From the NCBI RefSeq assembly GCF_030144855.1, contig NC_082718.1, positions 92,628,001 through 92,692,000 of the forward strand: 64,000 bases of DNA, written 5' to 3'. Source of the stretch: Hypanus sabinus (Eukaryota). Below the pieces are notes generated by a model. That model ran no database searches, was not told the DNA's origin, and was given only the letters and a program-made list of their open reading frames with translations. Position numbers and translations under genes: made by a program. The first letter of the stretch is position 1; every line of letters starts with the position of its first letter. Of this stretch, positions 5,039-17,270 are shown piece after piece.

Positions 5039-5539
5039 AATAATAATTAATAACCTCAACCATCAAGCTCTAGAACAAAAACGACACTCATTCTGTTTCA
5101 GCTGTTCCCACAACCAATGATCACACTTTATGAACACTTTACATTGTTACTTCATGCTCACCTCATTTATTGCTATTTATTTATATTTGCATTTGCACAA
5201 TGGTTCCCATGCTGAACTTCTCTATGATTTTAGATGAAATTATAATACCTACAAAGAGTTGTTTTTCTGATTAGACTGAGGAAGATTGTGCTACAATTAC
5301 TGGCGGGCTATGAGCAGAATTGACAGCCTCACTGGAGACCCATTCCTGGGCTGATTTTTCCATTGTGCAAAGCAGAACAGTAACACAGTCACAACATTTC
5401 AGAGACAAGTAAGCTTATTCAGAATGATCATATATGACGTTCTACATACAGCAAAATTCAACGCATTGCTAAGTTGTATTCAAAGTTTGTTAACTTTGCT
5501 CCCAGAAAGCATAAGATTCAATGCAATGCATGCAGAAAA

Positions 5540-6695
5540 GCAATATTACAACAGTCACGGTGGAATTCAATATGCAGGTAAATTGGGAAAATCAAGTTGG
5601 TGCTGGATTACTGGAGAGGGGGATTTCCAGAGTGCCTATGAGAGGGCTTTCTAGAGCAGCTGCTGGTTGAGCCCACTAGACGGCCAGCTATTCTGGATTA
5701 GGTGTTGTGCGATAAACCAGAGTTGATTAGAGAGCTTAAGGTAAAAGAAACCTCAGGGGAAATTGATCATAATTTGATTGCATTCACCCTGAAATCTGAG
5801 AAGGGAAGTTAAAGTCAGATGTATCAGTATTACAGTGGAGTAAAGGGAATTACAGAAGCATGAGGGAGGATTTGACCAGAATAATTAGAAAAGAACACTG
5901 GCAGGGCTGATAGTAGAACAGCAATACCTAGAATTTCTGGAAGCTATTCAGAAAACTGAGGATATATACATCCCAGAGAGGATGAAGCACTTTAAAGGAA
6001 AGATGACAAACCATGGCTAACTAGAGAAGTCAAAGCCAACATAAAAGCCAAGCAGACGGCATATAATAGAGTGAAAATTAGTGGGAAGTTAGAGGATTGG
6101 GGAGCTTTTAAAAAGCAACAGAAGGCATTAAGAATATCACTTGGAAGGTAAGGATGCAATACAGAAGTGAGCTAAGCAATAATATTAAAGAGTTTAATAC
6201 AAACAGTTTCCTCAGATACATAAACAGTAAAAGAGAAGTGAGAGTGGATATTGGACCATTGCAAAATCACGCTGGACTGGTAGTAATGGGAGGCTATGAA
6301 ATAGCAAAGAAACAGACCAATTATTTGGCATCCATTTTCACTGTGGAAGACACTAGCAGGAAGGTGGAGGCTCCAGTGACAGGGGTCGTGAAGTGTGAGA
6401 AGCTGCCATGACTGGAGAGAAGATTCTTGGAAAGCTGGAAGGTCTGAAGGTAGATAAGTTACCTCGACCAGATACTGTATGCTCCAGATTTCTGAAGAGA
6501 TTGTGGAGATATCAGGCAATATCTTTCAAGAATCACTGGATTCTGGAATGGTTCCGGAAGATGGGAAAATTGCCAAAGTCACCACACTCTTCAAAAAAGG
6601 AGAGAAAGGAAAAGGAAACTGTAGGCCAGTTCATCTCACCTCGGTGTTGGGAAGATGTCAGAGTTGATCATTAAGGATGAGGTCTCAGGGTACTG
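5540..6695 (+). mobile_element. CR1-clade LINE internal fragment (EN end to RT start)
   Basis: Translates to EPTR..AILD.VLC, DHNLI.F, and ESLDSGMVPEDGKIAKVTTLFKKG..GNCRPVHLTSV, typical of CR1 ORF2. Confidence 0.85.
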
Positions 6696-6699
6696 GTAA

Positions 6700-7455
6700 A
6701 TTGGTCCTGCAGATGCCCTCAGTGAAATGAGCAAAACATTATTCAAATCCATCTAAATATATTTAATTGCAGTTCTGTGCATATTACTCACAGAGTACAG
6801 CGAGATAAGCACATTCCTAGAGTAGATTTCGTGTTACCACAAATATCTGCAGAATGGAAGTTAAAAGTCAGTTCTGCTCTCCTTCATGCAGCCTGGCCAC
6901 GATTCCCCATGCTTCTGGGAGGAGAGGCTGCAACGGTCTCTCGGGCCACACTGCATCGTGATGTTTAGAATGTGGTGAAGCAGTTCAGTGCGTATTAAAA
7001 TCATTCACTGCTGCACAGCTGCCCTACTCATAGTTCTCAATAACTAGCGTACCTCTGCATACGAGCATGCATGCAGTTAAATCACAAGCATATATCTGAG
7101 CACACACGACCGTGCATCACAACGTTCTTCCACATTCTAGCTTCCCCAATTCAACTATCTGCATGTGTGCAATCGTGCACGTATGCATAGACGTACTGAA
7201 GCTCAGGCTGGCCTGTGTGAAATAATGGAATAAACAACGCTGGAGATATTTTAATTTGATTCTGTGGGTGCGGCGGGAGGGTTTGGGGGCAGGATGTGGA
7301 AAGCACCTGCTATCCCAGTATCCCACACGCCCTTGTTTGTAAAGACATTCTTCACAAGGGATGTTCGGTGTTCATTCTTTTCAACACTGCCATCTTGTGT
7401 TGGAGTTCTTAGCTGCAAACAAGTGATCCACAACAGTCATTTCCAAAGAATTAGA
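6700..7455. repeat. Non-coding module in every monomer (18600-19350, 29120-29878, 39047-39802, 50890-51637, 61415-62169) with an old diverged paralog at 12183-12885 / 44524-45226
   Basis: Directly alignable by eye, e.g. attattcaaatccatct, agagtagatttt, ttcatgcagcctg, ctcgggccac, tcattcactgctg, caacactgccatct. Confidence 0.85.
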
Positions 7456-7571
7456 GCAAGTAAATTGCTGTTGGTTGACATTCCTAGATGGAGCCGACCA
7501 GGTTAGCATAATTATTTTAACATTAGTATAGCAGAGAGGCTCTTACAACACTCTGGTAACTTCATTGGCAC

Positions 7572-7830
7572 CCATAAGACATAGGAGCAGAATTGGGCCA
7601 TTCAGCCCATCGATTCTACTCCATCATTCCATCATGATTGATTCATTATTCTTCTCAATCTCGTTCTCCTGCCTCATTCCCATACCTTTCATGCCCTGAT
7701 TAATCAAGAACCCATCAACCTCCACTTTAAATGCACCAAATGATTTCACCACCAAAGTCATCCGTGGCAAAGAATTCCCCAGATTTGCCACCCTCTGGTT
7801 TAAGAAGTGCATAGTCATCTCTGTTGCAAA
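7572..7830 (-). mobile_element. CR1 3' end, uninterrupted (empty site of the main L1)
   Basis: ORF 7624-7818 (FLNQRVANLGNSLP..FKVEVDGFL) is the CR1 ORF2 C-terminus, followed by a CR1-type tail (gatgggctgaatggcccaattctgctcctatgtcttatgg). The same element is split by the L1 in the A and C monomers. Confidence 0.85.
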
Positions 7831-7840
7831 TCCTGATCAT

Positions 7841-14790: not shown

Positions 14791-14915
14791 TGTCCAGGTT
14801 TGTGGTTCTGTATATTCAGCTGTCTAATTATCTCAGAATGTAAAAAAAAAATCTGTAGGGGGTGGACAGGGGTTGAGAATGCTCCTGATCTCAAGTGGTG
14901 GACATATTGCAGACC

Positions 14916-15158
14916 TCATGTGTATTTAATACTCTGTAATAGTTGAGAACTCTTGTATATATATATATTGATTGATTGATTGATTAAGGATTCTTGTTAT
15001 AATTAATTTTAATTTCTGTGTAAATTACATACATTGCATACGTCATCACATGGTATGTGTGCGACTCCTTTGAAGTAAAAGAACTAACTTAAGACATATC
15101 TCTCAGCTCTTGTTCGCTTTTGAATTAGTTTAATATTTTGAAGTTTCAAAACATAACA
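14916..15158. mobile_element. Possible solo LTR (also ~47186-47429)
   Basis: About 240 bp AT-rich block ending ..cataaca, with (TA)n and (GATT)n inside and imperfect flanking cagac/cagag. The 5' TG is decayed. Confidence 0.3.
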
Positions 15159-15999
15159 CAGAGTCATCAAACAATTTTGCTTCCTCGTAATCATGCAAGC
15201 AATGGAGCACAAAATGATATCATTGAAGCTGCTGTACTTAAGCAACTGTTCTTTTTTTATTTAAGGAATTGTAATAAAAGAAGTTCATCTACTTCCTCTG
15301 GTTCGGGGAAATGATTCAGCTTGAGTGGCAAGGTTCCTGAACAGAATGGTTTAAAAATATCTGAGTGAATGAAAATCTATCCTGGTGTGCAATAGAGATG
15401 CAGAGAGACATGATGGGACCAGGAAAGAGGAAACTGTCAAAGCAGCAGGGCTTCAGAGGTATCACAACCATCTGTGATCCTTTGGCTTGTAGGGAAATAT
15501 TAGAATCAAACTGTGAGTTATAAAACTAATGCTGGAGGGTAAATAGAGTCTTCGAGGGAAATATATCAGGGATTCCTATGAGGGATGAAAACCTGATGCT
15601 CAGTGGTGGGTCGTGATCCTGTTGGAAATATTCTCAAGTGTCCAGGAGAGAGTAATTTGCATGAGCACTGACACACTATCATTGTCAGCAGGTCTGATGA
15701 CATTGCAGGAGTCATTCTTATTGAAGGGAGAGTTGCAAATTCAGGTTCACTCGGTCAGAGTGAACAAATTGAAACAATTAGTGCTGAGTTGGCAGAGAGT
15801 GATGAATGGATCTGGAGAAGGAAAGGTCTTTGAAAAGGGACCCAGTCTTGTGGAGGATTCTGGAAATGGGGAACCTCAGTGTTGAGGGCACCTGAACATG
15901 GGAAGTCAGATTTTTAAGCACTTCTCAAGAGAGTCACTCAAAATTCTCATGGGAATAGCAGTAGATGAATAGCCTGCAGTAAACTGCTCCTAGTGTTAC

Positions 16000-16345
16000 A
16001 CCATAAGGCCATAAGATATAGGTGCAGAGTTAGTCCATTTGGCCCATTGACTCTGATCTGCCATTTCATCATGGCTGACCTACTTTCCCTCTCAGCCCCA
16101 ATCACCTGCCTTGTTTCCATATCTCTGCATGCCCTGACTAATTGAGAACCTATCAACCTCTGACTTTAATACTCCCAATGGCCTGGCATCCACAGCCACC
16201 TGTGGGAACGGATTGGACAGAGTGACCTTTCGCTGGATAAAGAAATTGTTCCTCATCTCCGTTTAAAAGGCGTCCTTCTATTCTGAAACTGTGCCTTCTG
16301 GCCTTACATGACCCCACCAGAGGAAACATCCTCTCCACATACAAA
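16000..16345 (-). mobile_element. CR1 3' fragment (also ~48286-48631)
   Basis: ORF 16153-16344 (VERMFPLVG..RRHSFRIEGR) and a tail ccataagatataggtgcagagttagtccatttggccc. Confidence 0.75.
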
Positions 16346-16948
16346 TCTGGTAGGTGGTAGAATGCGGCAGGAAGAAAAGAGGATGTGGAGAGAATTTTTA
16401 AAATGTTATATTAACTTAGTATTTGGGTAAAAGGAGGTTTGACAGTCACCAGAAACATAATGGGGGTAAATCATTCATTTCTCACTGTGACGTTGTGCTT
16501 TGCAAAGAGAATGAACAATATGTGCACCCAAAAACCAACAATTTTAAGATTTTTAGTTGTCATGAACCACACTGAACATGCACTTTGAAACACAAATGGA
16601 ACATGAACTTTGTCACACAAATGGATCTGTGACAAGCCTCACTCTATAGTAAACAGCTTCTTTCACCATCAGCTCTTTAACCATGTTAGGAGCAATTTCT
16701 CATTCTATTTCTTCACTCAGTCTGACTCCCTGCCTTCCCATCCAGGGTATGTGGTGTTAAACTAAAAGCAATCCCAAATGGTCAGAGTGGAAGTGTGCCC
16801 TTACGTTCTCAGTAAGGCCCCCGATTTCAGGTGCACTGTTAGCTGCCAGATCCAGAAGGAACGTTGGCATCATTCATGTTCCTACTCACGAATAATAGCC
16901 TAGAAACAGCTACTGCATATACGTTAAGGATTTGACCACACGTTACAA

Positions 16949-17230
16949 TACACTCAGTGGCTACTTTATTAGGTAAATCGTCAACCTAATAAAGAGGTGA
17001 CTGAGTGTACGTTCATATTCCTCTGCTGCTGTAGCCAATCTATTTCAAGGCTCAGCATTCTGAGATGCTCATTTGCATCATGCTGTTGTAACAAATGGTT
17101 ATCGGAGTTCCTGTCAGCAAGAACCCACCTGGCCATTCTCCTCTGGCCTCTCTCATTAACAAAACGTTTTCACCAACAGAATTGCTTCTCACTGGATGTT
17201 TTCTTTTTTTGTTTTTTGGTCCATTCTCCA
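16949..17230 (-). mobile_element. Tc1/mariner remnant, truncated at the inversion junction (also 49234-49515)
   Basis: Reverse complement of ~31700-31986; begins tacactcagtggctactttattagg. Confidence 0.75.
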
Positions 17231-17270
17231 ATTAAGAGCAATAATTAATTAATTTATAATATTAATTATT

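Follow-up and report, generated by a model that had tools for sequence, protein, structure and literature searches.

Circles are believed to be released all the time from tandem gene arrays, and reintegration of such circles in the germline has to our knowledge been documented in few cases only. The kind of event is already known: duplication mediated by eccDNA has a precedent (PMC7188851), a circular intermediate has been described for human segmental duplications in which the order A-B/C-D changed to B-A/D-C (PMC7450558), and the KIT translocations of cattle colour-sidedness are cited as going through circular intermediates (in PMC12235870 and PMC7450558). The published signature of a circle depends on single-copy donors (PMC7450558, PMC7188851).

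The window, i.e. the whole stretch of 64,000 nucleotides of Hypanus sabinus DNA analysed here, carries tandem repeats of a gene which, judged by its matches, is a hydroxycarboxylic acid receptor-like GPCR (rhodopsin-family 7TM, nearest to HCAR1/2/3). In the first repeat, M1, the GPCR ORF is intact (80–1114, with the annotated start probably near 107); it matches Pfam 7tm_1 at 1e-47, has HCAR1/2/3 as best PDB matches at 1e-68 (next family 1e-38) and is 82–98% identical to elasmobranch 'HCAR2-like' proteins. Neighbouring repeats measure 10.55 kb, of which L1 takes 5.3 kb, and the basic repeat minus L1 is ~5.28 kb long. Inside the L1 of M1 lies an insert of 12.2 kb on the minus strand, for which self-BLAST and local alignments gave the order d'-G-a'-L1-like fragment-c'. 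The features referred to below are the following.

1–1684, plus strand: segment a of M1, with the HCAR-like GPCR ORF.
1917–5038, plus strand: 5' part of the M1 L1, cut at 5038 (equivalent to 26662 in the intact copy).
5039–5052, plus strand: 14 nt at the left end of the insert, AATAATAATTAATA, repeated perfectly in inverted form at 17260–17273.
5039–7761, minus strand: c', inverted intergenic segment c, corresponding to M2 28812–31536 (BLAST, 92.9%).
7756–7766, minus strand: pre-integration (empty) L1 target site in the insert, seen as a homology abutment.
7798–8844, plus strand: older L1-like 3' fragment of ~1.05 kb, specific to the insert lineage.
8844–10426, minus strand: a', inverted gene segment with a pseudogene inside, corresponding to M2 21813–23393.
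10427–16598, minus strand: G, 6.17 kb, absent from neighbouring repeats, located at the d/a junction.
16599–17228, minus strand: d', inverted tail segment, corresponding to M2 31717–32335 (BLAST, 90.5%).
17229–17272, plus strand: AT-rich filler of 44 nt in four parts, at the right junction.
17273–18440, plus strand: 3' part of the M1 L1, resuming at the equivalent of 27690.
18633–21783, plus strand: own segments c, t and d of M1 in normal orientation (BLAST).
20975–21154: t in M1, the 5' part of the Tc1 relic.
21800–32351, plus strand: M2, the intact reference repeat with a, L1, c, t and d (BLAST and local alignments).
23521–28812: uninterrupted L1 of M2.
37399–49558, minus strand: second full copy of the insert, in unit 2, with junctions identical to those of the first (BLAST).

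Hallmarks of an L1 retrotransposon are present in the interrupted element (ORF2 remnants, 3' tail, TSD and the empty site of a paralogue), and its M1 copy matches Pfam Exo_endo_phos_2, RVT_1 and zf-RVT (endonuclease, RT). A reading of this DNA made earlier from its letters, hereafter the sequence-only reading, had placed the stop of this L1 at 5038 with a loss of ~1.03 kb, and the two halves of its TSD at 1917 and 18434. Both placements were reproduced by self-BLAST and local alignment: 1882–5038 matches 23481–26662 at 95% (BLAST), homology stops exactly at 5038 and resumes at 17273, the 1027 bp equivalent to M2 26663–27689 are gone from M1, and the 7-bp TSD ATGACTG is found at 1917–1923 and 18434–18440. 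The block was inserted into a once-intact L1, for which a simple inversion is inadequate, as had been argued.

Followed along the minus strand, the insert begins at repeat position 31717 and comes round to 31536, in an order that is permuted relative to the donor. Its ends, previously estimated at ~31700 and ~31522, are 180 bp apart in repeat coordinates, just as anticipated, and M2 31537–31716 is missing. This missing segment lies inside a Tc1-type transposase relic (ORF 31553–31876, whose homologues have the HTH_Tnp_Tc3_2 and DDE_3 domains), which agrees with the proposed opening in or near the Tc1 remnant. One full turn of the monomer holds in homology coordinates only, and the insert cannot be taken for the neighbouring monomer permuted: it is devoid of the L1 and carries the 6.17-kb G and the 1.05-kb L1 fragment in addition. 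The latter matches the L1 3' region 27807–28372 at 66–68%. Since G is TE-rich, with high-copy stretches, and holds relics of segment c (12889–12175 and 11960–11691, 67–73% identity), it probably represents an old repeat or spacer in a state of decay; its boundary with d' is spanned at 16553–16861 by one contig from a relative. The remainder of the Tc1 relic is found in d', along with a 61-bp mini-Tc1 (TIR pair 16949–17009). With halves of the relic on both flanks of the insert and a contiguous Tc1 relic ORF in A-type repeats, at least two tandem repeats must have flanked G in the source. Mobilisation as a TIR transposon or Tc1 composite is disfavoured, because the 14-nt termini do not resemble the Tc1 TIRs found at this locus and the target has a 1027-bp deletion, not a target-site duplication.

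The donor left its own record in the insert. There, 7756–7798 (equivalent to M2 23521–23479) adjoins 7761 (M2 28812), i.e. the L1 target site is empty, and therefore the donor lineage never carried that L1. Segment c' differs from A-type c by K2P 0.06–0.07. For d' the distance from A-type d is 0.10, against 0.055 among the A-types; being twice as far, d' is not M1's own tail. Together the empty site and the K2P distances identify the donor, at the level of sequence comparison, as a separate L1-free repeat lineage distinct from M1 and M2, in line with the older array lineage that had been suggested. The K2P distances also bear on a very improbable scheme, in which two independent simple deletions (with an inversion) took place in an arrangement of L1 repeat, G, L1-free repeat and L1 repeat, or a composite transposon moved by means of its 14-nt terminal inverted repeats. 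Such terminal repeats are indeed there, and joints in forward orientation could formally be deletion joints, but d' stands 0.10 from the A-types versus 0.044–0.049 for the 5' half of M1 and, being twice as diverged, comes from another repeat than a and the L1 5' part of M1; two separate coincidences would be needed as well, one placing the L1 breakpoints within 1 kb and one placing the Tc1 breakpoints within 180 bp of each other.

Of the two joints the left is clean; the right contains filler for which the partners of the left joint served as templates. The filler consists, in order, of CAAT, TAAGAGCAATA (17233–17243), 16 nt of unexplained origin (17244–17259) and TATTAATTATTAT(T). Its 11-nt part TAAGAGCAATA is the reverse complement of intact L1 26657–26667, across the left breakpoint, and TATTAATTATTAT(T) (17260–17273, 13–14 nt) is the reverse complement of 5039–5052, the far end of the insert. 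Shuffles gave p ~0.006 for the 13–14-nt end copy and p ~0.03 for the 11-nt L1 copy, the latter before allowing for its exact position. The terminal 15-mer has no other occurrence in the window (0.05 expected), and 5039–5052 is native sequence at the end of c', where G/C-to-A/T changes are the sole departures from A-type repeats. Microhomology at the joints is 0–1 nt, with 1 nt common at 5038 and at 17273. As the filler copies both the other end of the insert and intact L1 across the other breakpoint, the two junctions were evidently formed in one templated repair event that held all four ends together.

In this respect the locus is similar to polymerase-theta end joining with random integration (PMC5508229) and to T-DNA filler (PMC8395108), where a foreign end is joined at a chromosomal break with filler of short flank copies, minimal microhomology and target deletion. 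The filler seen here matches the templated insertions described in POLQ-dependent random integration (PMC5508229), and the features of TMEJ-like repair are present: filler copied from near the breaks, short microhomology and the 1027-bp target deletion. Unlike in the polymerase-theta cases, both partners of the other junction served as templates, at a distance of 12 kb along the insert, which points to synapsis of four ends; polymerase theta is the presumed enzyme. Whatever the source of the insert, the junctions are informative in that all four DNA ends were paired in one repair event. The same copies are accounted for differently by an unlikely two-step route, in which forward insertion from a source circular or linear alike was followed by inversion in place through staggered breaks, with L1 ...26667 / ATTG / d...G...a...c / L1 27690... 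as the precursor. Short breakpoint sequences inverted at both ends of the block are reminiscent of staggered-break inversions (Ranz et al. 2007, PMC1885836), and the layout of that model, A b (c' X' b') c D (PMC1885836), fits with b = TATTGC (5033–5038), b' = GCAATA (17238–17243), c' = 5039–5052, c = 17260–17273 and X' ending ...CAATTAAGA. In contrast to such inversions, however, the duplications span no more than 6 and 14 nt, with 16 extra nt (17244–17259) left over, and the prior forward insertion amounts to an extra event; a forward-oriented copy was not seen in the window, and an aborted forward-orientation pairing within a single end-joining event yields the same copies.

Based on these features one can suggest that a 12.2-kb piece of the HCAR-like array was captured at a double-strand break in the M1 L1 in a single repair event. 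This piece begins within the Tc1 relic of one repeat, takes in G and ends where the Tc1 relic of the following, L1-free repeat starts. With its ends 180 bp apart in repeat coordinates, the simplest source is an extrachromosomal circle, for which we put the odds at about even. Recombination between the live repeats on either side of G would have made the circle, and a later break in the Tc1 relic would have opened it with a loss of ~180 bp. The molecule would then have been attached to the L1 ends through alternative (polymerase-theta-like) end joining at the cost of ~1 kb of L1. The extrachromosomal state, the circularity and the enzymes involved are all things that we infer. The entire course, in which a repeat-to-repeat circle left the receptor array in the stingray germline, was taken up by a neighbouring repeat through templated joining of four ends and was propagated within a higher-order repeat, is plausible, though our confidence in it falls just short of even.

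Like circle-mediated duplications, the locus presents a permuted block at another place, junctions with microhomology, small indels and filler only, and breakpoints in interspersed repeats (here L1 and the Tc1 relic). The difference is that the single-copy donor of those duplications makes the internal fusion novel and thereby proves circularisation, whereas the donor here is a tandem array. The head-to-tail junction pre-exists in such an array, so the permuted order follows from any linear or copied piece of about one period. Within the insert, segments adjoin one another just as they do in a normal array, the d/a junction occurring also in A-type repeats, and nowhere in it can a circle fusion point be identified. 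The adjacency of the ends fits the excision and reintegration put forward in the sequence-only reading without proving them, the permuted order being obtainable without a circle. Evidence specific to a circle thus comes down to the 180-bp adjacency: any break of a circle yields adjacent ends, and a random linear piece does so in ~7% of cases for the 5.28-kb period. Since the finding was selected for this adjacency, its weight has to be discounted.

An explanation by replicative template switching of the MMBIR/FoSTeS kind, or by the capture of a linear copy, dispenses with a circle, leaves the donor intact and makes the proximity of the ends coincidental; we consider it possible but tentative. 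A collapsed fork or break in the M1 L1 would have passed to the opposite strand of an array segment close by, 12.2 kb (c, a, G, d) would have been copied, and two to three short switches, producing the filler, would have preceded the return to L1 1 kb downstream. The insertion is local and inverted as in MMBIR/FoSTeS insertional duplications, the filler strings together short stretches for which nearby sequence was the template, the joints have 0–1 nt of microhomology and the return site has a deletion, which also makes up the classic template-switching picture; the same junction features were taken as MMBIR-compatible in PMC7450558, and the permuted order is no obstacle. Against this, the copied tract starts and ends within 180 bp in repeat coordinates (~7% by chance), and a tract of almost exactly one repeat-to-repeat turn is not predicted by the model. 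Neither switch point showed a structure-forming sequence; the TIR palindrome 16949–17009 is situated 220 bp inside.

Divergence is unevenly distributed along the insert. At ~0.5 kb short of the end of c' the insert-specific rate rises from 0.028 to 0.056–0.074, and it remains high in d', as noticed post hoc, while M1- and M2-specific rates are flat; divergence is patchy elsewhere too, for instance where differences cluster in the 3' flank of a'. Such a step may be expected from a circle-forming crossover of diverged repeats, and gene-conversion mosaicism would explain it equally well. If reinsertion of a circle is true, this would be a base-resolved case of eccDNA reintegration reshaping a gene array outside mammals and yeast, and if the donor locus confirms excision, it would illustrate how inverted, pseudogenised members and higher-order structure come to an array via circles. 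As a methodological caution, circular permutation alone must not be counted as evidence of a circle in tandem arrays.

After its formation the structure of M1 with the insert would have been propagated by later duplications of the array. In the self-BLAST of the window 1–25992 is 98.4–99.4% identical to 32352–58288, and 26063–31710 only 92.9% identical to 58287–63994. The supposed amplification as a 32 kb unit therefore applies to ~26 kb, in which the copies share 98–99% identity, and fails for the remainder (93%). Junctions of the unit 2 insert at 37398/37399 and 49558/49559 are the same as those of the first, and the two insert copies differ by K2P 0.003–0.014. An array so highly repetitive invites the thought of an assembly artefact, which is hardly credible here, where the same junctions recur in two window copies that differ by 0.3–1.4% and have coherent signatures (intact TSD, empty site, templated filler). 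The GPCR of the insert is a pseudogene (9328–10360) with a frameshift at codon 115, detected by tblastn in two frames and by Pfam on both pieces, and P0001 is 100% identical to the GPCR copy of unit 2.

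The unit of ~32.35 kb is present twice in the window and contains two plus-strand repeats with a single-exon GPCR gene, M1 and M2, both of which retain open 344-codon frames in each unit. The intact repeat M2 serves below as the reference for coordinates, and primes denote minus-strand counterparts of its segments inside the insert.

Repeats of unit 1 and parts of the insert, the latter in minus-strand order
1-21799, plus strand: M1, the insert-bearing repeat
21800-32351, plus strand: M2, intact, with segment a carrying the gene, a 5.3-kb L1 (23521-28812), intergenic segment c, a Tc1 relic (its 5' part is t) and tail d
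17228 to 16599, minus strand: d', equal to M2 31717 to 32335
16598 to 10427, minus strand: segment G, within the insert
10426 to 8844, minus strand: a', equal to M2 21813 to 23393
8844 to 7798: L1-like fragment, within the insert
7761 to 5039, minus strand: c', equal to M2 28812 to 31536

Homology of the M1 element to the intact L1 stops exactly at 5038 (26662 in M2) and restarts at 17273 (27690), so that 1027 bp are lost. The composite L1 lies between two halves of a 7-bp target-site duplication, ATGACTG, at 1917 and 18434, and the same duplication accompanies the intact L1 of M2. The material between is both permuted and inverted, and its ends lie 180 bp apart in repeat coordinates. The missing 31537-31716 is inside a Tc1-type transposase relic, in keeping with the sequence-only reading, which had placed the opening in or near the Tc1 remnant; the relic was named indirectly, via homologues of its ORF (31553-31876) that carry HTH_Tnp_Tc3_2 and DDE_3. 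In repeats of the M1/M2 kind (A-type) this ORF runs unbroken across t and d. A Pfam search of the ORFs of G and of the relic ORF itself gave no match. The insert junctions recur unchanged in unit 2. This insertional rearrangement is real and well resolved, and belongs to a known kind, but its junctions are unusually informative.

Several simpler histories were discarded. Simple inversion, already dismissed in the sequence-only reading, is excluded together with double inversion and two independent deletions, both on geometric grounds and because d' cannot be the tail of M1 itself; d' is an outgroup to d of M1 and of M2, which also rejects local excision of M1's neighbour. For a fold-back (mirror) duplication the flanks are no mirror of the insert, and for a composite transposon there is no target-site duplication and the termini are not Tc1-like. 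The proposal that a whole monomer had been permuted holds for the near-adjacent ends, but not for the content: compared with the neighbouring repeats the insert is devoid of the L1 and has G and an L1 fragment in addition.

The array gene is, judged from its predicted product, a hydroxycarboxylic-acid-receptor-like GPCR, with a Pfam 7tm_1 match at 1e-47, HCAR1/2/3 at 1e-68 in comparison with structures, and 82-98% identity to elasmobranch "HCAR2-like" proteins. The protein of M1 in unit 2 is identical to protein P0001. A frameshift at codon 115, common to both units, makes the gene copy in the insert a pseudogene (9328-10360 and 41675-42707, minus strand). Elsewhere in arrays genes are spaced by 5431 bp in Hypanus and 6214 bp in Hemitrygon, and M1 without its L1 and insert measures 5283 bp, which sets the basic unit at ~5.3-6.2 kb. 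The 6.17-kb G probably represents an old repeat, or a spacer, that has decayed. It sits exactly at the d|a junction, where A-type repeats show a simple join with 2-4 nt of microhomology. High-copy elements are abundant in G, which also contains two diverged remnants of segment c at 67-73% identity. The insert thus runs from the tail of one live repeat through G into the following live repeat, most of which it includes. At 7756-7798 (23521-23479) it preserves an empty L1 target site adjoining 28812, and its lineage (B-type) therefore never had this L1. It also carries an older 1.05-kb L1 fragment.

Recent insertion of G into an A-type junction is unlikely, in view of the old c relics and of a relative's contig spanning the d'/G boundary. 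Nor is G the interior of one large Tc1 bounded by terminal inverted repeats (TIRs) at 13247 and 16975, because the two point outward and 16949-17009 is a 61-bp mini-element. This mini-Tc1, found also at 31925-31986, lies within the larger Tc1 relic and comprises two 26-nt TIRs placed back to back around a 9-nt spacer; a solo TIR occupies 13247-13272, and in related genomes such TIRs reach very high copy numbers. A GA-rich microsatellite in G differs by ~65 bp between units (13994-14144 versus the 46349-46414 region). Short relics of the GPCR N-terminus, matching residues 6-57 at 50-53% identity, occur in segment c (5292-5375, minus strand) and in the old c relic of G (11688-11840, minus strand), which points to an older duplication tier in the array.

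Circular intermediates have a published signature, in which the order of blocks is permuted and the joints bear microhomology or indel scars (PMC7450558, PMC7188851); a case in cattle is cited in these papers and in PMC12235870. Published donors are single-copy, which makes the internal fusion point a new junction and gives the signature its force, whereas the donor here is a tandem array. On such a chromosome the head-to-tail order pre-exists, so any tract roughly one turn long, whether linear or copied, also looks permuted. Adjacency of the ends is certain for a circle and would be met for a random tract in ~2 x 180 / 5283 = 7% of cases, a contrast whose weight is to be discounted since the finding was selected for that very feature. 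A circle, or an equally long excised molecule, is thus a reasonable, unproven reading that could equally well be right or wrong. Somewhat less likely is template switching or a linear copy, for which the local inverted insertion, templated micro-insertions and downstream return are also expected as MMBIR/FoSTeS output, and against which stands the rarity of such end adjacency. Artefact or other explanations deserve very little weight. Among relatives, compared as short contigs of ~95% identity, none covered the insert junctions or a donor, and no sequencing run matched in a search with junction k-mers.

The junctions themselves are asymmetric. At the left joint L1 ...TATTGC abuts the native c' end directly, with one nucleotide common to both; here c' aligns to A-type without gaps and differs at G/C positions only. 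The right joint holds 44 nt of filler (17229-17272).

Parts of the right-joint filler
Part 1: CAAT
Part 2: TAAGAGCAATA, reverse complement of intact L1 26657-26667, spanning the left breakpoint and including 5 nt now missing from the left joint
Part 3: 16 nt, no source assigned
Part 4: TATTAATTATTAT(T), perfect inverted copy of the 14 nt at the left end of the insert

In composition-preserving shuffles the terminal copy had p ~0.006 and the L1 copy p ~0.03, neither value taking the exact positions into account; the filler 15-mer has no other occurrence in the window (0.05 expected). Both templated pieces match forward-orientation pairings, of the d-end with the left L1 end and of the c-end with the right L1 end. 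They may have arisen as aborted forward-orientation pairings inside one end-joining event that brought all four ends together, in the manner of POLQ-type templated insertions (PMC5508229). Alternatively, the piece went in forward first and staggered breaks inverted it afterwards, following the pattern of PMC1885836, but this leaves 16 nt of filler unaccounted for and seems improbable to us. Under either history the two junctions are linked and repair was templated.

The last 20 nt of c' (5039-5058) have seven differences from A-type, all seven from G/C to A/T, with every A/T position conserved, so that this breakpoint end is AT-only and triplet-repeat-like. Deamination-type hypermutation was weighed as a cause, but the changes lack strand coordination and slippage explains a triplet-repeat-like stretch equally well.

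K2P divergence between copies
Segment a: insert to A-type 0.05; M1 to M2 0.049
Segment c: insert to A-type 0.06-0.07; M1 to M2 0.054
Segment d: insert to A-type 0.10; M1 to M2 0.055

In segments a and c the insert, M1 and M2 form a near star of three lineages. Insert-specific differences climb from 0.028 to 0.056 ~0.5 kb before the c' end and reach 0.074 in d', while M1- and M2-specific rates stay flat; this step suggests that both sides of the permutation point came from a single lineage that is more distant. Exactly such a pattern would be expected if two diverged repeats had crossed over to form a circle. The change-point was, however, located post hoc and divergence is patchy elsewhere too, and gene-conversion mosaicism would explain the pattern equally.

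Amplification as a 32-kb unit, also put forward in the sequence-only reading, fits 1-25992, which matches unit 2 at 98.4-99.4%, but not the second half of M2 (26063-31710, comprising the 3' half of its L1, c, t and d), which is only 92.9% identical to 58287-63994. The switch at 25992/26063 (58288) coincides with a 70-bp indel and indicates that M2 of unit 2 is recombinant with a third repeat lineage, the higher-order repeat being a mosaic. A Hemitrygon akajei protein is 93.5-93.7% identical to the M2 protein (21879-22913) and to the insert pseudogene translation (9328-10360), to which the M1 protein is only 91% identical (proteins P0002, P0003); by these comparisons some repeat lineages may be older than the divergence between the two stingray genera, or M1 may be a fast-evolving copy. 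M2 is also without 197 bp present in M1 just upstream of the L1 site (1685-1881), and as the insert retains the end of this stretch (gene strand, ~7835-7800), the deletion is private to M2.
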